Assembly: GCF_006345805.1 (NCBI RefSeq)
Contig: NC_042998.1
Span: 97,650,001 to 97,714,000, forward strand
Origin: Octopus sinensis
Lineage: Eukaryota
DNA length: 64,000 nt
Reading direction: 5' to 3'
Each line of letters opens with the position of its first letter. Within the stretch, counting starts at the first letter, position 1. A program made the position numbers and the translations under genes. This document shows positions 92-60,664 of the stretch, piece by piece. A model generated the notes under the pieces. It did no database searches and was not told the origin of the DNA. It was given only the letters and a program-made list of their open reading frames with translations.

Positions 92-486
92 TCTCTTTTA
101 CTCTTTTACTTGTTTCAGTCATTTGACTGTGGACATGCTGGAGCACCACCTTTAGTCGAACAAATCGATCCCAGGACTTATTCTTTGTAAGCCTAGTACT
201 TATTATATTGGCCTCTTTTGCCAAACCGCTAAGTTACGGGGACGTAAACACACCAGCATTGGTTATCAAGCGATGTTGGGGGGACAAACATAGACACACA
301 CATACATATATATATATATACAACGGCCTTCTTTCAGTTTCTGTCTACCAAATCCACTCACAAGGCTTTGGTCGGCCCGAGGCTATAGTAGAAGACACTT
401 GCCCAAGGTGCCACACAGTGGGACTGAACCCGGAACCATGTGGTTGGTAAGCAAGCTACTTACCACACAGCCACTCCTACGCCTAT
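92..486 (-). mobile_element. tRNA-head SINE, full length (octopus OR-type, CORE-like), CR1-type tail
   Basis: A/B-box-like head (ggagtggctgtgtggtaag...gggttcagtccc), ccttgggcaagtg core start, central microsatellite, tail ggtgctccagcatg..cagtcaaatgactgaaac and (AAAAGAGT)n; near-identical copies at 1182 and 11235. Confidence 0.9.
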
Positions 487-1181: not shown

Positions 1182-1579
1182 ACTCTTTACTCTTTTACTT
1201 GTTTCAGTCATTTGATTGCAGCCATGCTGGAGCACCACCTTTAGTCGAACAAATCGACCCCAGGACTTATTCTTTGTAAGCCTAGTACTTATTCTATCGG
1301 TCTCTTTTGCCGAACTGCTAAGTTACAGGGACATAAACACACCAGCATCGGTTGTCAAGTGATGTTGGTGGGGGACAAACACAGACACACAAACACATAT
1401 ATATACATGTATACGACAGGCTTCTTTCAGTTTCTGTCTACCAAATCCACTCACAAGGCTTTAGTCGGCCCAAGGCTATAGCAGAAGACACTTGCCCAAG
1501 GTGCCACACAGTGGGACTAAACCCGGAACCATGTGGTTGGTAAGCAAGCTACTTACCACACAGCCACTCCTGCACCTAT
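1182..1579 (-). mobile_element. tRNA-head SINE, full length, same family
   Basis: Aligns end to end with the copy at 92-486. Confidence 0.9.
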
Positions 1580-8320: not shown

Positions 8321-11300
8321 CTACATGAAGAAAATAAAAAATTGAAACACTTGTTTATAAGGACAGGAAAATGATTTTACAAAAACCTTTAGATTATTTT
8401 ACTTCAATAAAATTGAAGCTGAAAGAGTTGTAAATGTTAATAACCAATCAATCCAATCTAAGATTTTGGCTTTCAAACTCAAATGTATTGATTTTCTTGC
8501 AACTTATTTTTAAAGTCAATATGTGTATGAATGCATATTCAGTCCCAAGAGTTCAATGAGATAAGACCTCCCCACTGATAAAAAAAATAGTACTCAGATG
8601 ATCTGATAACTTATTCTCAACAGTTATAACGGATAAAAAACTTTTTCTTTTTTTTTTTTTACTGACTAAACGATTTCAGTTTGCAACAGATTTAACATTT
8701 CCTGCAGCATTTATTTAAAAACTTGATGCATTTTTAAGTAAATATGCCTAGATTTCCAGTCTATTCAGTTTGATTTACAAGGGAAATAACTGTCTTTCTT
8801 GAGAAAAAATGAAATTTGTTCAAATACAATCAAGATTGGTAAGTCAATATTTACTTAAAATATTAGATATATTGTGAAATCATTTAGCTCATTAAATGTC
8901 TTAATCATGTCCAAGTGAGAAAAGAAAACTAACACAAAACTAAAAAAAAGAACATTAAAGAACACTGAATCAATGAAACTAAAATTTAAATAACTTAAAG
9001 AAAGGACTAAACATTACCTTCAATAATGTCTGCACCAGCACCTCGGCGAGGAGTATTTAGACAGCTATATGTTTGCCAAACGTCAGTATTAGGATCATAA
9101 ACATTGACAGAGTTCAAGCAATTCCAACTGCTGCTACCACCAATAGCAAAGATTTTACCATCATAAGTGCAAAGAGCAGCTTGAAAATGACCTATCAATT
9201 AAAAAGCAAAGAAAAATTTTCCTGAACAACATACAGTAATGAAAACAGCAAAAAAGAAAAAAGAATTCCATTGCAAGTCAATAAAAGACAATATTACAAT
9301 ATTTTACCTTAATTTATTTTAAAATACTTTTAATAAAAACTCAAATACAACAGAAACTAAGCGAAATTCACTAACAGACTCTGATGATGACTAAAAGTAG
9401 CAAAAACATAGAAAGGTAGATATCTACAAAGAAAACAGTCAATTACAAATTTTTTTAACATGATGACGGAAAGTTTCATAGGACTAGACACTGCAAGTTT
9501 AGATATATTTATGATTGAATAATGAGCAATAAATGTTATTGGCACAAATTTGCAGTGGAAAGATATAGTTGATAGAAACTACACTTATACACATTATTTC
9601 ACCAACCTTGGAGAAGGCCCCCAGCAGATTATGAAGATTGAAACAAAATATAGAATAACAGATATTAGAAGCAAAAACAAGATTACTAATAAATATTACC
9701 ATCACCCCTGCCAACTACTTCCAAAATTGCACTTAATTTGAGTGTCCTATTCTTATTTGCATGTCTTTATTTAAGTTTTTGTTATTTTATTCTATATTTA
9801 TTAACAAGTAATTTTCATGATAATTCTTATTAGAACAGTATTAACAGTTACGGTAAACTTTTAACTTCCTGTAGAACACAGTACCCAACATGTCAGCCAG
9901 TCCTGAAACACCCAATAATCCCTAAGAGATACTGCTTTCTTTGATTTGAGTTTCCTACAGTCGAATGCCCTTCCTGACACTAACTCTTGCCTGTTTTAAA
10001 GCAGGGTACCATTTTCCTCACCCCAACCACCCAAAGCTTACTGCCAGGACGTGTTTTCATGGCTAATTAAATAGATATCATCTATACAATAGTACCACTG
10101 TTTAGTGTTAACATTTATGCAGCTATAAGCTTCCTTTCTTTTTGTTTCATCACACAACACTTATTTTTTGACAAGAACAAAATTTTGAACTACTTTACTC
10201 TCAATTGGTTTCATTACTTATCAGTTTTAAATTTTATTTGGTGGTATCAGCTAACATCAATAAATGATGGTATTTATTACTTTAATGTGAAGTTTGCTTT
10301 TACAAAACAACATTCATCAACATTGAATGTCCGTTTTCTGTACTGGCATGTTTTGAACAATGACAGAAGTTGGCAAGCCTTTCTACAGCTGGATGCCCTT
10401 CCTAATGCCAACCACTTTACGGAGTGTACCGGGCACTTTTTATGTGGCACTACAATTGCAAAAAAGGCAGTATGTTGATATTATATTAAAATGAAGTGCT
10501 AACCTAATAATGTACATTCCTGAGAGTCAATGCTCACCAATCAAGAGGCCAAAAATAAGATAAATGGAGCATTGCAAGATAATGAATTCTAGATTGACAA
10601 TCATTATATAGTGAAATCAAGAATTTATTTTACACAATTACAAACCTTCATTCAGTAAAGCAATGCTGTGCCATTTGTTAGTAACTGGATCATAAGCTTC
10701 ACAATCTGCAATACAGCGTTGACCAGTGCAGCCACCAATGCAATAGATCTTGTTATTTAGTGCAACAACACCTAATAAAATAAAAAAAATATACACTTGG
10801 CTTAATGGCAAACTTCAAGTTTAGAAAAATATTCAAGATTTTGTTTATCAAATTCAAGAAAAATTACTTACCAGGACATGAGCGTTCTGTCTGCATATCA
10901 GCAACAAAAGACCATTTGTTAGTTTCTGTGTCATAGCATTCTACAGACCGCAGTTCATGGTGACCATCAGAGCCACCACATGCATACAGCTTGTTGTTAA
11001 GAACAGCCACAGCAACACGTCCACGTGCAACTTTCATTGGTGGCAAACTTGTCCAAACATTATCCTGAATATTAAACATCTCAGCACTTCTCAAACATTC
11101 ACCTCTCTCGTAACCACCTAGAAAAATGAAATGAAAACATCTTCATAGAAATGCTTACAATCAAGAATTATTTTAGTTGTTACTATCATTCAGTAAAGCA
11201 TTTATCAGTAATATAGAATGATAAAACTGGAGTATACTCTTTTTTTTTTTTTTTATACGTGTTTCAGTCATTTGACTGTGGCCATGCTGGAGCACCGCCT

Positions 11301-11444
11301 TTAGTCAAGCAAATCGACCCCGGCACTTATTCTTTGTAAGCCCAGTACTTATTCTATCGGTCTCTTTTGCTGAACCGCTAAGTGACGGGGACGTAAACAC
11401 ACCAGCATCGCTTGTCAAGCAATGCTAGGCGGACAGACACACAA

Positions 11445-11489
<45 letters not shown>

Positions 11490-14400
11490 CATACATACAT
11501 ATATACGACAGGCTTCTATCAGTTTTCGTCTACCAAATCCACTCACAAGGCATTGGTCGGCCCAGGGCTATAGCAGAAGACACTTGCCCAAGATGCCACG
11601 CAGTGGGACTGAACCCAGAAACATGTGGTTGGTTAGCAAGCTACTTACCACACAGCCACTCCTGCGCCTATGTTTTTTTTTTTCAAAACTTGTGTATTTT
11701 GTTTGAAGGTGTTTAATCATTAGATCTAGTCCAAAATTTGCTGTTTAAAACATCCAACCGCATGTATCAAATGGATCTCCACATTTATATTCGTAACATA
11801 TGTTTATCTGAACTGTAATGTTCATATTTTTTAATGTCTTTTCCTTATCTTTCCTTACACTACTAGGATCAGTGTACTAAAATTGCAGCTACTTATCCAC
11901 TCTTAAACAACATCTCCCCGAGAAATTTTGCTGTAAGATAATCCTGGTACAGCTGCTAGTTTACAGGTATTTCCACTACAGTAGGTAATTTTTTATTTCA
12001 GCTTTTTATGTCCTATTAGATATGCCATGGTGTGAAGTCTCTCTACAATCTAAAAGGAGAATCTAGATTGCATATTATAAGTGAGTAATATATTATTTTA
12101 TGTAAAGAAATAATACCTGCATCAAAAGTAATTTCAGTAGTTTCTGGTAAAAAATAATGTTTATTCATTTGTATGAATGTAACAACTGAACACGTCAATA
12201 TGGTTGCTAGAATTATCAGCCTAGCACTCTAAAAATCCTCAGGAATTAAGAGACATTAAAACTTTAATGTTTTTTAATAATTTTTTCGCTTTCAAAACCT
12301 AATTCCTGTAAATTATAAAGAGCGCGCAATGTTCACTAGTATAAAAGTTACCTCCCCTGATATACCAACAAATCATTTTACAACTATCCATCATTATTAT
12401 CGTTTAACGTCCGCTTTCCATGCTGAAATGGGTTGGAGGGGGAGCTATCCAGACTTCAATTGTCTGTGGTGGCAAGTTCTATAACACACTTAAAACAGAA
12501 AACAATGAAAAACGTGAAAGAATGGTTACTTACCAACAGCAACAAGATTTTTATTGAGTATTGCAAGTCCAAAACTGCATCGTGCTGTACTCATTTGTGC
12601 AAGGAGAGTAAGGGAGACGTTTCGTTCAATAGATCCAGGTCTACTAACATCAGTGGAAGGAACATTGGTAGGCGACTCTGGGTCAGATACTGTACTACTT
12701 GGACTATGAGGTGGACATGGTCTTAAATGGAGGGTGACAATGGACAAAGAACCATTCATTATAGTTATTCCAACTGAGGTACGCTCTGCAAATAAAAGAT
12801 AAATGAAAAAAATTAAGCTAAGCAACTTCAAAAATGTAGTGTATGTTGTAGAAAACAATGAAGACTGGATGGATATTATTACACAATGTAACTGCTTTAT
12901 ACAGCATGATGTTATAAACTGTTAGTACATGAAGAAACAATTATATTAAAATGATTGAATAGTACAGTAGTGGCACAGTTTGAAACTACAAGAATTGTCA
13001 TAGGGCTTCATTTCATGCCAATAAGTTGTAATTACAGCTTTAAAGATATTTAACTCTTGCAAAAGACTGAGTCACAGGAATTTGATGAAAAATGACTATA
13101 TAATAATTTGCATCATTAATTCATCTAGAAAGTCATGAGCATTACTCATATTGACCAATGAGAAGTTTTACAACTGCTGTTCTAACTCAACTCTGGCTGT
13201 CACATCTTTTATTCCAACAGGGTGAGCTACAATACAAAGGTGCCAATAGCTGTAAGAGCACAAGACCTCTTATTACATAAGTGAAATTTGGTGGTTCTCA
13301 AAAATTCAAAAGTAATAGGTGAAATTTATTCAAAACAGATTTTTTTAGGGTTTCATTTACCTTGCAAGTAAATTGCCTACTTGAACTTCCTGTCTATCTG
13401 TTAGGCATTATTTCAGTATGCAACCATTTCTCCCCTTGCTTTAAAATTAAAGCACTGACTTGATTTTTGTTGTTTCATTAACATATTCCTTGACCCAACA
13501 TTCCTTATGAATTCCTCTGAAACCAAGTGTCCCAATTGGCAATTCAGCCTTTCTTTAACTACTCACTAACTACTATTCTTCTGCACATTCCAATGATGCA
13601 CTTGATCTTTTTCTTTTTTTTTTCAATATATTGAACTATTTGTACTTCTTTAAATATTGACTTTCAGACAATAGTAAATCAATTCTTACATTTTTGACCC
13701 CTTCATGCAGGACCTTTTTTTCTATCATGATCTACCTGTAAAGATGTTTTGCATCGATTACTATACTATACTACATAGGAAGATCAGCTATCTTTGTTTT
13801 TCAGTTTGAAATTATGCAATTAATCATGACATTTCTTCTATGTTCTACAAAGATGTTAGGAAGACAGTTTCAATAAAGAAATGGAATTGGATCACTGCAT
13901 AATAATCAACCATAAAATGGGGGGGGGGGGTTTTTTTTAAATAACAGCAAACTATATTAATTTCCTTGATTTTGTATTAATGAAATAAAATAGACTTTTG
14001 TAACAGATGCACTCCAGCATCTGGCATACAGGCATAGTGTCTCCACAGTGTTTTCTACTGCTACAATAACAGCCTGTTTTGTACAGCTGACTTGTGTTGT
14101 ACCTTCTCTACTTACCTACTCACCTCTTTACCCACACACCTTATACAACCACTTCCTCCCAGAACATCAGCACTACTACTACTACTACCAAGAAACAGCA
14201 ATAAAAAAAATACTAACCTGCTGATTGGTATGATGCTAGTAAAGACCATTCATGTTCACTCTGAATCCATTCACAATCACCAGAAGCAAGTTTTCTCAAC
14301 TGATTTGGAGAAAAATTACTTGCATCCATTTTATTTTTGCAATTAGCTAACTGAAAAAGTACAAACAAAAAGTCACTAATAGAATGAGTGTTGAAAATAA

Positions 14401-17400
14401 ATATTTCTTATCTGTTTAAATAAAAATAAGTTGCTGATAAACAATATGAACAATTACTATACACATCTACAGCAAAATTGTCAATTCTTTTACTGGTGAT
14501 GGTCTCATTGAATTATAAGCCATGCTTGAAATTAAGAAATTCATCCTCAAATTTTCCACAACAATATAGAATATTAATTTGCATGCATTGACTGTGCTTA
14601 AAGATTGAATAATTCTTATAGCATTTTATCAACAGTGAAATAAGAATCTAGAATATAGAAAAAAAAAACTATCATTTCATTGCTGTTAACTGCTACTATC
14701 AAAATCATGCCAAGTCCATTAAACACTGTTACCCTGTTCCTTATGACAGCTTTTTATAGCAAAACAGAATATTGGGTGGTTGCTATCCTCATCCTTGAAG
14801 ACTCCTGTTGGACAAGACACCACTGTCACAAAATTAAATATCAACCTCAAATGTAGACACTGCAATTTTGTAAGCTACCGTACAGTCCTCCTTTATAATT
14901 GTTATTTAGTTTCAGGTCAGACTTGACTGAGCAGACATGATCAGCCTGTCTTTTGAATAACAAAGACTTAGTAGCTTTCAAAAAATACCGCAATGTGCCC
15001 TTCATTGGTATACCTATTTTACAGTTTTGATATTGGGTGTAACTAATTGCAAATGCACCAAGCAGTAAAACTTTCAATAGATGCAAAGTTTCTGAATTAT
15101 TTACACCAGGATAAAATTTAAAAAGAAATATATAACTGTTGTGGTTTACCTGCTTCTTCTTCGACAACAGTTTGTAGTCTTTTATCATATCATCTTCCTC
15201 TAAACTAGAGTCATCCAAAAATCCACAGTCTTGTAATGTTTGATTGTTGTTTAGATAAAGCATGTGTGTCTAAAGTTAATTAAAAATACAGAGAGAAAAA
15301 TTCTTGAGAAGAATTTAAATAAAAGAAGTGAACTAAATTAGATTTTAACACCATGTATTACTCAAATCCACCTAATAATGCATATTCCTCCCCATTCTGA
15401 CACATACAGCCTGAAACCAACCAATTTTGATTATATTTGTTTTCAAACAAGTAATGAACTCTCATCTGAGAAGGAAAAAGAAAAAAAAAAAAAAGATCCC
15501 TACCTCTACCATTTATTTACATTCTTTAATGTTTGCTATTAAAATCAACACACATACAGCAGACTTCTTGCAACTGTTTACAGGCAGGGCTTTTTTATTT
15601 TATTTTTATTTTGAAACTTTCATGCATACTCTGATATGTTTCTGAAGGTTGTAACTCAACTAGTGTATTTCATAATAAATAAGTTGCAAAAGTCAGGGTG
15701 AAAACATTTCTTTTATTGTGATGTTTCTCCTATGTCTATTACAATTATTACTAGCAACTGTCTTTTTTTTTTAGTGTATCTGTCTTTAATTTTTAATCAC
15801 ACATAGACAACATTATTTTTTTAGCACAATGACAATTTACAGAAAAACAGAAAAAAGAGAACTAAGTCTTTTCTACAATAATCTGATCACAATAATTATA
15901 AGTATTTGAATAACAATTCCATTTTCAAGTATTTTCTGCATTATCATTACAAAACTGAGGTAAATTTATATAAAGACGCTAAGAGTTAAAATTATTTAAA
16001 AAAATTTTAGCTACTAAATGAATGCTACAGAGAAATTAGAAAAAATTAAAAATTTCAACAAACCTGTTCAGTGAGATAATTGAAAGAGCCTCTAGCTTGA
16101 GCAAGCATATTTTTAGCCCAATTGAATACCAGATGAAATATATGAGCATCAATTTTGTTACCAAGAATAGTTTCATCAGCACCTAATTGGAAATAAAAAA
16201 AATTTTTTAATTAATTAATATATCTAAGTTTTTCTTAAAAGAATTTTTCAAATTAAATTTTAAATATAAATTAATTTCAGTAATATTATCTGTCTTTCTC
16301 CTAGTTGGAACAAATTTACAAATTATGAAATATTAATGTCTTTTTAGAACTGAAAACGGATTCAAAATCTCATTAAACTAGAATGACAGATTTTAATTGC
16401 TCTTCACTGTCAGGACATTATGTCAGGAATGCCAATATTTTACGAAAAACATTATTTTGATGGGTTAAAAACCTGAGAAAAATAGTTATGATATACTATG
16501 CATTAATGTTATCTTCATGTAGAGATATAATGTTGGAGATATTTAGTTTTTCACCCAATTTGGTTTGTTATAGGTTAGTCAAAAAAAAAGTAATTACATA
16601 ACCTTTCTGCAAGTCTGCAATGATTAATGAAGGAGAGGGAGATAAACAAAGAAACTATAACACTTGGATTACTGCAGTAGGAAGCAGTTGTTTGCAACAT
16701 GGTGGATTAAAGGCAGCCAAAAGGCCAGCAGGTGCTGTTTGAGTAACAGATACATCTGAAAAGCTTAACCAGAGTCTTTCATAAAAGTCATTTTCTCAAG
16801 GTACCAGGTGATTGCCAAGTGAACAATTTAACCAAATATGTGTGTGTATGATGGACTCTCCTATTGTTAGACAACGTAGGAGCGTTTGACAATTTCTTAC
16901 TGAACAACCACAGGTAATTTGTTTCAGTGATCAAATGTTTGTGTATTTCTATGCCAGAAATAATCCAAATTTCTAATGGCAACACTTTAAGCTAAAGTGA
17001 AACACTCAAATCACTAAGAGCTGATATAGAGTATTTAAAAGTACATCAAAAGCCATAAAATTGCACTATGGCAAATCTACCCATCACCTAACATGAAAAT
17101 ACACACGTAAATCACTGGATGATGAAGCATACATTTTTAAATGTAATACTTTTTTTTACTGATTTCAGTTAATGGATTATGGCCATGTTAAGGCACAGCC
17201 TTAAAAGTTTTTGTGTTTATAAATATTCTATTTTATCAATCTTGAAAGAAGCCAAAATGACGTAGTCCTGGTGTTAAGGGAAATAACTCAGTCTTTAAAC
17301 ACACTGTCACAAGCACAAAATAAAAATTCTAAAAGTACTATCAAAAGTACTATTTGCATCACCGGTCTGGAACTCCTATCTTGCCCAGGATATCAATCGT

Positions 17401-40429: not shown

Positions 40430-40772
40430 AAGGCATGGCTGTGTGGTTAGAAAGTTGCTTCCCAGCCACATGGTTGCGAGTTCAGTCCTACTGCGTTGTT
40501 CTCGATCAAAGCCCTGCGAGTAGGTTTTGTAGACAGAAACTGAAACGTTATGTGGATGGGGAGGGAGTCCTACCACCGCTTGACAACCAGTGTTGTTTTG
40601 TTTACGTTCCCATAACTAACGGTTCAGCAAAAAAAAAAACTAAAATGAATAGTAGGCTTTGTAAAAAACAAAGTACTGGATTTAATTTGTTCGACTAAAC
40701 CCATCAAGGAGGTGCCCCAGCAAGGCCACAATCTGATGACTGAAACAAGTAAAAAATAAAAGAATAAATAAA
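40430..40772 (+). mobile_element. Diverged OR-type SINE
   Basis: Head, core and tail ggaggtgccccagcaaggccacaatctgatgactgaaacaagtaaaa. Confidence 0.8.
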
Positions 40773-41069: not shown

Positions 41070-41425
41070 AAGTGCAGATGTGGCTGTGAGGTTAAGAAGG
41101 TTGTTTTGTAACCACGTGGTTTCAGGTTCAATTTCACTGCACAACATCTTGGATATGTTGTCTACTATAATCCCAGGCTGGGCAATGCCTTGAGAGAAAC
41201 TGTTATGTGTGTGTGTGTGTTTCTATTTGTCACACCACCGTTGCTTGACAACCAGTATTGATTGGGCTATGCTCCTGTAACTAAGAGGTTCAGCAAAAGA
41301 GACAACAGACTAAGTACAAGACTTTAAAAAACATAAGTACTGAGACAATTTGTTTGACTAAGCCACCCAAAGCAGTGTCCCAGCATGGCCACACTTCAAT
41401 AACTGAAACAAATAACAGATAAAAG
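41070..41425 (+). mobile_element. Diverged OR-type SINE
   Basis: Head gtggctgtgaggttaag..ggttcaatttcactgc; tail cccagcatggccacacttcaataactgaaac. Confidence 0.75.
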
Positions 41426-48409: not shown

Positions 48410-48542
48410 TACTCTTTTACTTGTTTCAGTCATTTGACTGCGGCCATGCTGGAGCACCGCCTTTTAGTCGAGCAAATCGACCCCGGGACTTATTCTTTGT
48501 AAGCCCAGTACTTATTCTATCGGTATCTTTTGCCGAACCGCT
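48410..48542 (-). mobile_element. 5'-truncated young OR-type SINE (tail portion)
   Basis: Near-consensus tail with CpGs intact; ends abruptly at gccgaaccgct. Confidence 0.9.
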
Positions 48543-54130: not shown

Positions 54131-54409
54131 GCTATCACAGCCTTGTTGTTTCATAAGGTCAAAGGTGGAAAGAGTGTCTATGTCTGCTTGCACCTGCAAA
54201 AACATTTAAAACAGTTAACAAAAGCATGGTATATGCTACCAGATCATTTACACCTGCAAGTGACAGTTATGGGATTTTTGTTTTGGTATTTTTATCATAG
54301 TAAATTAAATAAATAAATTTTGCCTTGACAAGAAACCTTTCTACACTTATATAAAAACATGATCTTTCTTCTGTGTAGTAAACTATGCAATGCATTATAA
54401 AATATCTTT

Positions 54410-54630
54410 TATCTTTTATTAGTTTCACCCATTGGACTGCAGCAATGCTGGGATACCCAGCATGGCTGCAGCATTTTAGTCTAATTAATCTGCCCCAGTA
54501 CCTATTTTGATAAGTCTGGTACTTATTTGATTAGAATCTTTTGCTGAACTGCTAAGTTACTGGGATATAAACACTGCAACACTAATTGTCAAGCAGTGGC
54601 GATAGGGCAAACACAGGCACACAGACACCC

Positions 54631-54663
<33 letters not shown>

Positions 54664-54830
54664 AAGCTTCCACAGTTTCCATCTACTAAATTAACTTACA
54701 AAGCATTAGTTGGTTTGGGTGTATGATAAAAAAAAAAACACTTGCCCAAGGTACCAGACAGTGGGACTGAACCTGAAACCACATGGTTGTAAAGCAAGCT
54801 TCTTAACCACTGAGCCATGCAGGAATAAAA
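54410..54830 (-). mobile_element. Diverged OR-type SINE
   Basis: ttttgctgaactgctaagttac..(CA)n..cacttgcccaagg..gtgggactgaacc. Confidence 0.75.
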
Positions 54831-56556: not shown

Positions 56557-57371
56557 TATATATATATATATAAAACTCAAAATGTGTGTGTGTGCTTTTT
56601 ATGCGTTTTCACATTTTCATCCAATTTTGATGAAATTTTTTTTTATTAAATGGCTAATTTACCCAGGCAACTCACTGCCACGTTATCAATACCTAGAGAT
56701 ATCCCTTCTAGGAGAAAAATTGATAGAACTGAAGAGACTACACACACACACTTTTTACAAAAAAAGTTGCCCACGAGAAAATTTTTTACAGGAACACCTG
56801 ATTTTTGTAATTTTGGTGTCAAAAGGACTGTCATGTTGCAACATTTCACACAAATATTTTGGCATTGTCTTGAGGCCTCTGATTCTCAAGAAAATTGCAC
56901 AAAACTTTGAAAAAAATTGATTGTTCACATTTTTGCAAAGTTACACATTAGAAAGCTTTTAACTGGAAAGTCCGATTTCCTTGGTTTTTATGGCTAAAAG
57001 GATGCGGTTAGTGGTAAAAAAGGTGGTGCTTCATGTTATTAAGGCAACAATTCTTATGGGTTGCTGCATCAGAGATGTCTTTATACCCAGGATACCTCTT
57101 ACTCCATCAGATAAGCAATGATCCTGTCCCTTGTGTGGACTTCAGTTCTCCTCTTCAACTTTGCTTTGCCATGTCCATCAACAAGTCCCAAGGCCAAACA
57201 CTAACAATGACAGGCCTCCATTTAGGCCAACCATGCTTCTCACATGGCCAGTTATACGTCAGATACAAAAAAATCCTTTTTGTGTTCGCCCTGAAAGTCA
57301 AAACGAAAAATATTGTCTACTGTGAGGTGCTGTAGGCCATCCAACATGCTGCAGCTTCCCTGCTGAACTAG
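56557..57371 (+). mobile_element. Non-autonomous Helitron with PIF1-helicase C-terminal remnant
   Basis: PLQLCFAMSINKSQGQTL..LHL..PCFSHGQLYV..LFVF..KTKNIVY.EVL*; short hairpin cagc..gctg, then CTAG|T at 57368-57372; 5' end is a TATATATAAAA-TGTGTG-type start (terminal TC not visible). Confidence 0.88.
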
Positions 57372-57810
57372 TTTATGGTGAGTGAGTATTATTGTTGCTA
57401 TTCTTTAAAAATTACCATTTTTTTTTATTTTGTCCACTACAGCTTCTCAATCTCCTTACAGATGGCTTGAGTTTTGGCATCACTGCACTCACTGCTTTTC
57501 ATGTTAATGGAAAAGGACGTTTATACCTGTGAATGGTTAACTATCCTTTTCAAGGCTATTGTGAGAATGATAACATGGCACTTTACATTCATTTGTTGCA
57601 AACCCTGCAATGCTCTTGTGGCTTCTCCAAGGCTTTTCAACCTTTATTTATGGTCTATGGGAAAAATCACTTCCTCAATGTCAGTGTTTGCAAGTGAACA
57701 CAAAAAATATTCAAAGAGATGTACAATGAAAAAAATGGTAGAGCCTGTTAAGACCATTGCCAAGTATTTAATACCCAAGCAACACTGGGTACTCCTGCTA
57801 GTGTATATAT

Positions 57811-57864
<54 letters not shown>

Positions 57865-57944
57865 ATATGTGTGTGTATATATATATATTTTAATATATTT
57901 ATTTATTTATAGATTCTTTTTAAATGTCTATGTAGTTATTATTT

Positions 57945-58448
57945 TCTTTTTTTTTTTGTAGTTTCAGCTCATAGCTGTGGCCATGCTGGAGCACCGCCAT
58001 TTTGCTACACTTTATTTACTGAGATCTTCCTTTAATATATGGCACTTGGTGTAGAATGGAGTTTGATGTAGCTACCTTCATTTACACCTCTTGCCATGAG
58101 GTACGTTCATCTGGGACTCAACAGGAAGAGGTCCAGTCTTGATTTATAAACGCTGACATCTACTTTGTGGAGATTCTTCAGCTTCTTTGGGAGAATATTA
58201 AAAAGCTGTGGGCCCCTGAAACCCAGGCTGTTGCAGTAACTGGTCCTGAAGTGCGATAGCATTGCTGGGATCTTTGGCACTATGCAGTGTCGACCCATTC
58301 TGGCATTGGTGTAGTTTACAATGCCAAAATTTGGCACAATTCCTTCAAGGATCTTCCAGATGTATATTACTGCATACCTGTCCTGCCTTCACTCCAGGGA
58401 ATAGAGTCTTAGCTGTTTCAGCCTTTCCCAGTAGCTGAGCTGTTGCAA
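57945..58448 (-). mobile_element. 5'-truncated CR1-group LINE with complete 3' end and A tail
   Basis: LQQLSYWERLKQLRLYSLE*RQDRYAVIYIWKILEGIVPN...GPQLFNILPK.LKN...KSRLDLFL; 3'UTR ends ggcggtgctccagcatggccacagctatgagctgaaactac(A)n. Confidence 0.9.
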
Positions 58449-58656
58449 AGAGATGATATATATTTTAATGTATATATTTATTCTTTAAATTCATCTGAAA
58501 TCGGAGTCATGTTTATGAATTAAATTACCTGGTCTTATGTTTCTTCATATTATATATTTATATCTTTTGTCTCAAGTTCCTCTTGAGCACTTCTAGGTGC
58601 AAGACTTAACTCTGTGAGAGAATTTCTGATTAATCATATTCTTTCTCAATGCAATT

Positions 58657-58661
58657 ATATG

Positions 58662-58693
<32 letters not shown>

Positions 58694-58781
58694 TGTATGT
58701 ATGTATGTATGTATGTATGTATGTACGTACGTATGTAGGTATGTATGTATGCATGTATGTATATGCATATGTATATGCATG

Positions 58782-58816
<35 letters not shown>

Positions 58817-58818
58817 GT
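58657..58818. repeat. (ATGT)n/(AT)n compound microsatellite
   Basis: Seen directly. Confidence 0.95.
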
Positions 58819-58819
58819 G

Positions 58820-59070
58820 AAGGCACATGGCTTGGTGGTTAGAGTATTCAGCTCACAATCATAAGGTCATGAGTTCAATTCCAAGCAATGCGTTGTGTCC
58901 TGTATTTCACATTGCTCCAATCCACTCAGCTGGCAAAAATATGTTATACCTGTATTTCAAAGGACCAGCCTTGTCACATTGTGCCATGCTGAGTCTCCCT
59001 GAGAACTACATTAAATGTATGTGTGACTGTGGAGTACTCAGCCACTTACATGTTAATTTCATAAGCAGGC
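58820..59070 (+). mobile_element. Third tRNA-derived SINE type
   Basis: ggcacatggcttggtggttagag..gagttcaattcc head, then cattgctccaatccactcagctggcaaaaat; related fragment near 54000-54075. Confidence 0.65.
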
Positions 59071-59169: not shown

Positions 59170-59437
59170 TATCATGCTTGAGAAGAAGACCCATCAAGCC
59201 AAGTAAAATCACAGTTGTGGTAGATACTGGTGTCACACAAATAGCACCTGTGCTGGTGGCATGTAAGGGCATTCTTTACATTCTCAGGGTGGTTGGCATT
59301 AGGAAGGGCATCCAGCTATAGAAACCATGCCAAATCAGACTGAAGTTTAGTGCAGCCTTCCAGATTGCCAGCCCTGGTCAAACCGTCCAACTCATGCCAG
59401 CATGGACAACGGATATTGAATGATGATGATGATGATG
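59170..59437 (+). mobile_element. RTE ORF end (LEK.T..AK*) with short 3'UTR and (GAT)n tail
   Basis: ttgagaagaagacccatcaagccaagtaa .. ttaggaagggcatccagc .. gaatgatgatgat. Confidence 0.78.
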
Positions 59438-59439
59438 TT

Positions 59440-59441
59440 AT

Positions 59442-59517
<76 letters not shown>

Positions 59518-59552
59518 ATATATATATGTGTGTGTGTGTGTGTATATATATA
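59440..59552. repeat. Quasi-palindromic (CA)n-(TA)n-(TG)n microsatellite
   Basis: Seen directly; similar arrays at about 38925-38970 and 57800-57890. Confidence 0.95.
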
Positions 59553-60664
59553 TTAAGAAAAAGGAGGTAATTAGAATTTTGGATAATGATTTATTTAGCA
59601 CTTTCATTTCATTTTTGAGAATCATCAGACATGATATCTTTGCAGAAATTTCATGTGTTTTGTATCTATACTAGACTTACTACCCAGCCTTGCCCAGTAA
59701 AGTATTCATAGAACTGTTTGCCAGTTTGTAGAATGGGAATTCACAGTACTTATGCATTTCTATATATTTAACCTAACTTCAGGCCTTATTTAATTGGAAC
59801 AATCCAAACAATATTAATCAATTTACATGAGTAGAAGCTTTTTTTAAACAATTTTTATTCTGAAAAATCACCTGTTACTTTTGTTTTAAGGTGAAAGTGA
59901 GGGGAGAGTGAAAGATGTATAAATATGTATATGAAATGGACATGACAACACACCCCATCACTCACTCTGTCTCTCTTTTTCTCTCCCTCTTCCTTTCTCT
60001 CTTTCTTTCTCTCTCTCTCTCTGTCTTTCACACACTCACATCCATTACATATACACATACATACATCTTTCACTTTCTCCTCTCTTTCACTTTAAAACAC
60101 AAATAAATAAATAAATAAATTTTACAGAAATTAATGAACTCCAGATGGTGAAGTCACATTCAGTTAAAAATATTTCTAAATGATTAAAATATTGTGTATG
60201 TCAAAAAAACAACAGTTTTTTTTTTTTTCTTAGAGAGCTCAAAGACAATGTGTGTGTATGTGTCACAGATAGTGAACATGTATTTGTGTTGATTGACATG
60301 CCAGGGCATTCATTATATGTGTGTGTATTCTGTATGTGTGTTGAAATCATGGAAGTCATGTATTTTTTTCATCAAGAAATAACAAAAAATTGTATTTAAT
60401 CATTTAAATAGAGGTTCAAATGTCACAAAAAATTGCACTGCACTGCCAACAATAAGTATAAAAATAAATATGTAAAAAAATTAAGATAAAATATACTATT
60501 TCTGAGATATTTCAGTTACACACAAACATCCCTAAAGTTTTAGTATTATCAAGATGTGAGGTAGCTGAAACAAATCTGGGGTTGTGGCAGAAAATGTTTT
60601 CTGTTCTTTTGGATTTTTCTTACTTTCCTTTTTTTTCACCCTCTAACCAAACCTCCAAAATTTC

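Follow-up and report, generated by a model that had tools for sequence, protein, structure and literature searches.

A two-hairpin 3' module common to a decayed CR1-like LINE fragment and an abundant SINE of octopus

The analysis confirmed that a decayed LINE fragment and an abundant SINE of octopus end in one module of about 60 nt, which is composed of two hairpins and is followed by 8-nt repeats. Both elements are found in the window, which here means the whole 64-kb stretch of Octopus sinensis DNA that was analyzed. The module opens with HP1 and HP2, continues with AAAC, and closes with an 8-nt repeat (NNTAAAAG) present two or three times, with no poly(A). The module is probably the 3' UTR of an octopus CR1-like LINE group that was copied onto the SINE, and it would serve recognition by the reverse transcriptase (RT) of the LINE.

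The LINE fragment is located at 57945–58465 on the minus strand. It is the sole copy of its family in the window. It is truncated at the 5' side at around 58465, and retains the C-terminal part of ORF2 and the tail module. The orientation is given by the ORF2 C-terminal remnant (58107–58436, minus strand), whose translation is SYWERLKQLRLYSLE*RQDRY...LLSPR*. The remnant contains an in-frame TGA at 58389–58391 and a frameshift near 58110, after which the ancestral frame (VPDERTSWQEV*MKVATSNSILHQVPYIKGRSQ*) runs on until about 20 nt before HP1. Two intact-looking C-termini (P0005 and P0006) were used for comparison with this remnant. The translation is 60–70% identical in amino acids to ORF2 C-termini from Octopus vulgaris and other contigs, and the best relatives of the region in both protein and DNA are on the Octopus vulgaris chromosome OX597818. 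The copy in the window is a dead, 5'-truncated pseudogene.

As RNA, the 3' end of the LINE (57998 down to 57945) reads GGCGGUGCUCCAGCAUGGCCA-CAGCU-AUG-AGCUG-AAAC-UACAAAAAAAAAAAGA. HP1 corresponds to 57979–57998 on the minus strand, GGC-G-GUGC[UCCA]GCAU-G-GCC, with 7 bp and a G/G 1x1 internal loop, and is supported by RNAalifold, pair counts, and single folds. HP2, CAGCU-AUG-AGCUG, corresponds to 57965–57977 on the same strand and is supported by pair counts and the single-sequence fold. The remaining part of the tail (57945–57964, minus strand) consists of the AAAC spacer at 57961–57964 and what is left of the terminal 8-nt repeats, which are A-rich and degenerate, based on alignment with LINE tails ending in (NNTAAAAG)2-3; the 3' end is approximate here. 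Microsatellites of the types (TA)n, (TG)n, and (TACA)n are dense around the LINE fragment (57800–57935, 58600–58830, and 59400–59560). Just upstream of the fragment, an ORF on the plus strand (57033–57335) contains "...MSINKSQGQTLTMTGLHLGQPCFSHGQLYV...", which resembles the C-terminus of a Helitron/Pif1-type helicase.

The SINE is a short, non-coding, repeated element of about 400–450 nt, and 5'-truncated copies are present. The window contains three full-length copies, one truncated copy, and three divergent relatives (at 40.7 kb, 41.4 kb, and 54.4–54.8 kb), and further copies are seen in the 12-kb sequence that carries the LINE copy L001. The full-length main SINE at 11230–11680 (minus strand) is composed of a head with A-box-like (TGGCTGTGTGGTAAG) and B-box-like (GGTTCCGGGTTCAGTCCC) motifs recognized by eye, a body that a (TA/TG)n microsatellite interrupts, and the tail of LINE type. 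It is oriented on the minus strand because the head with these motifs is at the opposite end. Neither ARAGORN nor Rfam gave a tRNA call for the head, so the description of the SINE as tRNA-derived is based on motifs seen by eye. The (TA/TG)n tract inside the SINE bodies is variable in length, and SINE copies therefore seed microsatellites. No convincing target-site duplications were seen by eye around the SINE and LINE copies.

As RNA, the SINE tail reads ...GGCGGUGCUCCAGCAUGGCCA-CAGUC-AAAU-GACUG-AAAC-AAGUAAAAGAGUAAAAGAG. HP1 (11280–11299, minus strand) is the same in sequence as HP1 of the LINE, and HP2 (11265–11278, minus strand) is CAGUC-AAAU-GACUG; both are supported by the sequence, pair counts, and folding. 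A covariance model of the module finds nine instances in the window: four in main SINE copies, three in SINE variants, one in the LINE, and one at 17150–17202. Besides the copy described above, the main SINE has its tail at 98–152 (minus strand, 77.5 bits) in the second full-length element (about 96–486), which ends in ...AAACAAGTAAAAGAGTAAAAGAG, at 1187–1241 (minus strand, 72.5 bits) in the third full-length element (about 1179–1580), and at 48410–48463 (minus strand) in the 5'-truncated copy (48410–48542). Two of the divergent relatives are on the plus strand, one with its tail at 40706–40760, about 70% body identity, and HP2 of CAAUC-UGAU-GACUG, and the other with its tail at 41369–41423 and HP2 inner pairs of UU/AA.

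The third variant (full element 54405–54817) has its tail at 54408–54469 on the minus strand, recognized by folding and the covariance model. Here a 17-bp near-perfect hairpin, GCUGCAGCCAUGCUGGG-UAU-CCCAGCAUUGCUGCAG (−29.5 kcal/mol, z = −4.6), stands in place of HP1. The 3' half of the conserved box is retained and is paired with a new upstream complement.

Close to the third full-length element, a full-length 5S rRNA match is seen at 1587–1705 on the minus strand (Rfam RF00001, 89 bits, model positions 1–120). It is on the same strand as the SINE at 1179–1580, about 8 nt upstream of its 5' end, and has no T-run terminator. The region 1179–1705 looks like a 5S-SINE fusion generated via template switching of the reverse transcriptase, or like a member of a "5S" SINE family. 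Such a "5S" SINE family is listed for O. vulgaris (PMC13282606).

Positions 57975–57998 of the LINE (ctgtggccatgctggagcaccgcc) and 11276–11299 of the SINE are identical at 24 of 24 nucleotides. With up to three mismatches, this pattern occurs four times in the window and 0 times in 100 dinucleotide-preserving shuffles. A second block, gtttcag, is found at 57961–57967 in the LINE and 11261–11267 in the SINE. Beyond the 24 identical nucleotides, the flanking CUGAAAC is common to the LINE and the SINE, and the whole HP1-HP2-AAAC-repeat module can be aligned. An earlier note on this DNA had pointed out both blocks, together with the hairpins CAGCU-AUG-AGCUG of the LINE and CAGUC-AAAU-GACUG of the SINE. 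All of these are present as it described them, with the hairpins read on the minus (RNA-sense) strand, and the shuffles give no match by chance. What the note overlooked is HP1, the hairpin formed by those same 24 shared bases, and the 8-nt repeat that stands at the terminus in place of poly(A). A possible reading of the T-run at 11241–11255 as poly(A) did not hold: it is an expansion inside the terminal repeat of the SINE, and other copies have AAGTAAAAGAGTAAAAGAG.

A check proposed in the earlier note was whether other copies of the LINE carry the tail, and the answer is positive. The module follows ORF2 and is located at the very 3' end in seven of seven further LINE copies with retrievable ends, or eight of eight including the window copy. 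These copies are L001 from an O. vulgaris chromosome, L002, L009, and L010 from ENA contigs, L003 and L012 from Logan runs, and L013 from an NCBI assembly; L011 (a chimeric or bacterial contig) and L014 (a copy without the 3' end) were left out. They were obtained by profile searches with the ORF2 C-terminus, which found close relatives of 60–70% amino-acid identity whose contigs were then retrieved. The first single-sequence protein search gave four matches. The profile searches yielded more than 2000, each of them a short metagenome fragment with no name. One protein similar to the LINE is annotated as bacterial: P0003, "hypothetical protein, partial [Escherichia coli]" (NCBI/UniRef), is 70% identical to the octopus LINE ORF2 C-terminus, and almost certainly reflects eukaryotic DNA that contaminated a bacterial assembly. 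Scans with GGTGCYCCAGCATGRCYRCAG of metagenome and genome contig collections, which contain no usable cephalopod DNA, gave only chance matches; these are in bacterial genes rich in GC and have neither a hairpin nor a repeat.

In the LINE copies, the ORF2 stop is located 1–150 nt upstream of the module. Two intact-looking copies (L010 and L013) have a TAA stop 1–2 nt before HP1, and therefore the module is the entire 3' UTR. The similarity between the SINE and the LINE begins at about this stop/HP1 boundary. No full-length LINE of the window family was present among the copies recovered; 5' truncation is seen in the window copy and in every close copy.

Eight LINE tails and eight SINE tails were aligned (16 sequences). 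HP2 has the form CAGNN-loop-NNCUG (columns 24–28 with 39–43), and its outer pairs C:G, A:U, and G:C are almost invariant. Its inner pairs in LINEs are CU/AG (the window LINE, L003, and L012), CC/GG (L002, L009, L010, and L013), or UU/GG (L001), and those in SINEs are UC/GA (the main SINE), or UU/GA and UU/AA (the variants). The two inner pairs thus show four Watson-Crick and two wobble combinations, with pairing kept in 16 of 16 sequences. In contrast to these pairs, the loop is variable in sequence, and is 3 to 8 nt in length. Over the whole HP2 helix, 92.5% of cells are paired, versus 5–46% when the 3' partner is slid by 1–3 columns. None of 500 shuffles reaches the pairing, the double-change cells, or the covariation score of HP2, a statistic that ignores kinship, the four to six main-family SINE rows being copies of one family.

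HP1 has the RNAalifold consensus GGC-G-GUGC[YCCA]GCAU-G-GCC with a conserved G/G 1x1 internal loop, and 93.8% of its cells are paired. In L001 and L002, the pair 5:20 is U:A instead of C:G, and U-G intermediates of this change exist; a G-U pair is seen at 7:18 in 15 of 16 sequences. This G-U pair and the U-G intermediates indicate that the pairing fits the sense RNA strand only. Overall, the pair counts show 92.5–93.2% of cells paired versus 5–47% for slid partners, and these values, too, are reached in 0 of 500 shuffles. Three pairs have changes on both sides. The compensatory changes follow subfamily splits, and so represent only about four independent events. With this count, the covariation of the stem anticipated in the earlier note is seen: the inner pairs vary, remain paired in every sequence, and are not matched by the shuffles. 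Its proposal that structure is kept rather than loop-proximal sequence also agrees with HP2, whose loop varies freely while the inner pairs stay paired.

The minimum-free-energy folds are −17.5 kcal/mol (z = −3.0) for the LINE tail and −17.7 kcal/mol (z = −3.65) for the SINE tail. Single folds of seven of eight tails give HP1 and HP2, with energies between −16 and −25 kcal/mol; z ranges from about −1.3 to −3.9 and is mostly about −3. The eighth is the SINE variant at 54405, which folds as one long hairpin instead.

Within the 3' region, conservation is strongest in the module. In the 320 nt upstream of the module, the identity between LINEs is about 67% (mean over locally aligned stretches). 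The identity in HP1 is 86% between LINEs and 85% between SINEs and LINEs, and that in the outer three pairs of HP2 is 92% and 88.5%, respectively. The inner two pairs of HP2 are 66% identical between LINEs and 30% between SINEs and LINEs, and are always paired. HP1 is thus kept in sequence and HP2 in shape. The AAAC spacer is followed by 8-nt repeats of AGTAAAAG, AATAAAAG, AATTAAAG, or ATTAAAAC. The arrangement (NNTAAAAG)2-3 after the hairpins is seen in L001, L003, L010, L013, and SINE copies, and L009 has ATTAAAAC.

It can be proposed that the ORF2 protein would bind HP1 and HP2 of its own LINE transcript, and that the terminal repeats, by pairing with the nicked target DNA or slipping on it, would prime target-primed reverse transcription. 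The SINE would have gained the module as its own 3' end, likely when the enzyme switched template from the LINE. SINE RNA made by Pol III and presenting the module could then be accepted in trans and copied by the enzyme of the LINE. If recognition occurs in trans via the module, selection would therefore be expected on the sequence of HP1, the base pairing of HP2, and the repeats, and the inner stem and loop of HP2 could drift as long as the stem is paired. We infer the protein binding, the mobilization in trans, and the direction of transfer by analogy with tested stringent LINEs.

The earlier note proposed that this LINE family supplies the RT for the SINE. At the family level, the shared tail and the seven further LINE copies support the proposal. 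It is not supported at the subfamily level, where the exact inner stem of the SINE is found in no sampled LINE. Neither the UC/GA inner stem of the SINE nor its exact AGTAAAAG repeat is present in any sampled LINE, and the donor subfamily would thus be unsampled or extinct.

The LINE is called CR1-like on the basis of its 3' architecture and a C-terminal motif. A hairpin in the 3' UTR is followed by a tandem repeat of about 8 nt without poly(A), which is a CR1-type feature. The C-terminal motif Y.eRL..L.L.SLE.RR.R presumably resembles that of chicken CR1. A more distant relative is L016, from marine metagenome/Logan contigs, which is about 47% identical in the C-terminal domain. It is near-full-length, with ORF1 and ORF2, and contains the domains Exo_endo_phos_2 (APE) and RVT_1 (RT) and the same C-terminal domain as the octopus LINE. 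Its RT matches L1 and R2 RTs in PDB, and ORF1 has no homologue in PDB. The 3' UTR of L016 (3812–3885) contains an HP1-like hairpin with the core UGCUCCCAGCA and a different, still-pairing outer stem, CCGCU/AGCGG, after which come a hairpin of 3 bp and (CAGTTA)3. As a lead from the single sequence of L016, the HP1 core (UGCUCC(C)AGCA) may have existed long before the octopus family. The family of L015, 53% identical at the protein level, shows a vague resemblance in the 3' UTR. The covariance model did not find the module in either L015 or L016.

A hairpin and an octamer microsatellite are the hallmark of CR1 tails and of SINEs mobilized by CR1 (PMC4316615, PMC5729268). Amniote CR1 and its SINEs TguSINE1 and PittSINE (PMC4316615, PMC5729268) are similar to the octopus pair: a 3' hairpin described as the "RT-binding site" is followed by 8-nt repeats with no poly(A), the LINE copies are severely truncated at the 5' side, and the SINEs have a tRNA head and a LINE tail (the octopus head shows tRNA-like motifs by eye). 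The octamer of amniote CR1, AUUCURUG, and the octopus NNTAAAAG are unrelated by eye. The octopus tail has two adjacent hairpins and a cephalopod host, whereas one hairpin is described for amniote CR1.

In bivalves, both BivaV-SINE2 and BivaCORE-SINE1 have been paired to CR1-14_CGi via shared tails with compensatory changes (PMC4824008), and HCD-SINEs have CR1, CR1-Zenon, L2, or Nimb partners (PMC11481361). These pairs show the same logic and scale as the octopus pair: LINE and SINE have 35–61 nt in common at the 3' end, the stem-loops are conserved, and compensatory mutations are present. They belong to a different mollusc class, and their SINE and LINE families are other ones, as judged from the descriptions. 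The two papers make no mention of an octopus pairing (PMC4824008, PMC11481361). SINEs of the Deu type on CR1-type tails are also a recurrent combination, as in AmnSINE1/SINE3 with CR1-4_DR and SINE2-3_SP with CR1Y_SP (Table 1 of PMC3747384). The octopus SINE is likened to them by the RepeatMasker class of octopus SINEs, which are classified mainly as tRNA-Deu or tRNA-Core (PMC8967140).

In the "stringent" L2-clade systems UnaL2/UnaSINE1 and ZfL2-1/-2 (PMC1636434, PMC4176376, PMC3747384), the shared tail is essential and ORF2 binds the stem-loop. The mobility of UnaL2 requires the tail (PMC1636434), and the ORF2 protein of ZfL2 binds its cognate 3' stem-loop (PMC4176376). The conserved internal irregularity of their stem resembles the G/G mismatch of the octopus HP1, and terminal short repeats are present in both; in UnaL2 and ZfL2 they are used for slippage and priming. 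UnaL2 and ZfL2 belong to the L2 clade, with (TGTAA)n repeats and a single stem-loop whose loop is specifically read. In the octopus module, by contrast, the loop of the variable hairpin is free and the conserved sequence is in the other hairpin.

This difference in the loop touches on an alternative in which the module is selected for another job, such as 3'-end formation, RNA stability, export, or localization, and the SINE is mobilized via another feature. The unconserved loop of HP2 would fit this alternative, as the recognition by ZfL2 is loop-specific (PMC4176376). On the other hand, the module is at the extreme 3' end beside the terminal tandem repeats, where target-primed reverse transcription starts, and it is the only part common to the LINE and the SINE. 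In CR1 and L2 systems, a 3' end with this layout is accepted as the site where the RT binds (PMC5729268, PMC1636434). A different job for the module is thus considered improbable.

It is improbable to a similar degree that the SINE took the tail from the LINE group long ago and has since been amplified by another LINE, such as RTE or Dong-R4. Octopus has RTE and Dong-R4 LINEs in abundance or with recent activity (PMC8967140, PMC13282606, PMC9115989), and the lack of the exact SINE HP2 among the sampled LINEs would be expected from such a fossil tail. However, three SINE variants with only about 70% identity in their bodies are most alike in the module, and compensatory changes occurred on the SINE lineage itself. 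This conservation and these changes argue for continuing selection on the structure during the amplification of the SINE. A chance chimera, in which a SINE-tail fragment or a separate SINE insertion abuts this one LINE copy and the 3' end of the family is different, might be suspected from a single, decayed copy in microsatellite-rich DNA, but is hardly credible and was rejected because every LINE copy with a 3' end carries the module, the seven independent copies from other sources having it at the same place after ORF2 with HP2 variants different from that of the SINE.

Recognition of the shared module by the LINE enzyme remains the preferred reading, and the octopus pair then brings no new concept. 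It is one more case of the shared-tail rule, which was reportedly set out by Ohshima, Okada, and colleagues. The mechanism is well known, and the pair can be considered a solid, if ordinary, example of it; the pairing itself is not visibly published. A full-text literature search, with Repbase, Dfam, and SINEBase outside its range, found no octopus SINE-LINE partnership, and the literal tail and head sequences were not found in full-text papers. Octopus is absent from the table of SINE/LINE pairs by Ohshima (Table 1 of PMC3747384). Recent octopus repeat papers give SINEs and CR1 families without pairing them, and none of the papers searched names the LINE that drives octopus SINEs. No repeat class of octopus genomes is larger than the SINEs, which make up about 11.6% in O. 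vulgaris, and CR1 families are among the recently active LINEs of this species (PMC13282606). The SINE expansion is octopus-specific (PMC8967140).

With the partner lineage and the recognition module identified, the activity of the SINE and the LINE could be dated together, and the partner lineage would explain which SINE variants could spread. The module is a compact RNA element with natural compensatory variants, suited to a retrotransposition or binding assay. It can be speculated, quite tentatively, that the module is an undescribed RT-recognition element of a cephalopod CR1-like lineage that drives the octopus-specific SINE expansion (about 12% of the genome), rather than the RTE elements on which octopus work has put the emphasis, that its HP1 core is older, and that the 5S/SINE fusion at 1179–1705 is a template-switch footprint of the same enzyme.

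The remaining instance of the module in the window, at 17150–17202 on the minus strand, is decayed (covariance-model match, 32 bits), and the sequence upstream of it matches the SINE as little as the LINE ORF. It may belong to a further non-autonomous element, or to the 3' fragment of an old LINE, with the same tail.
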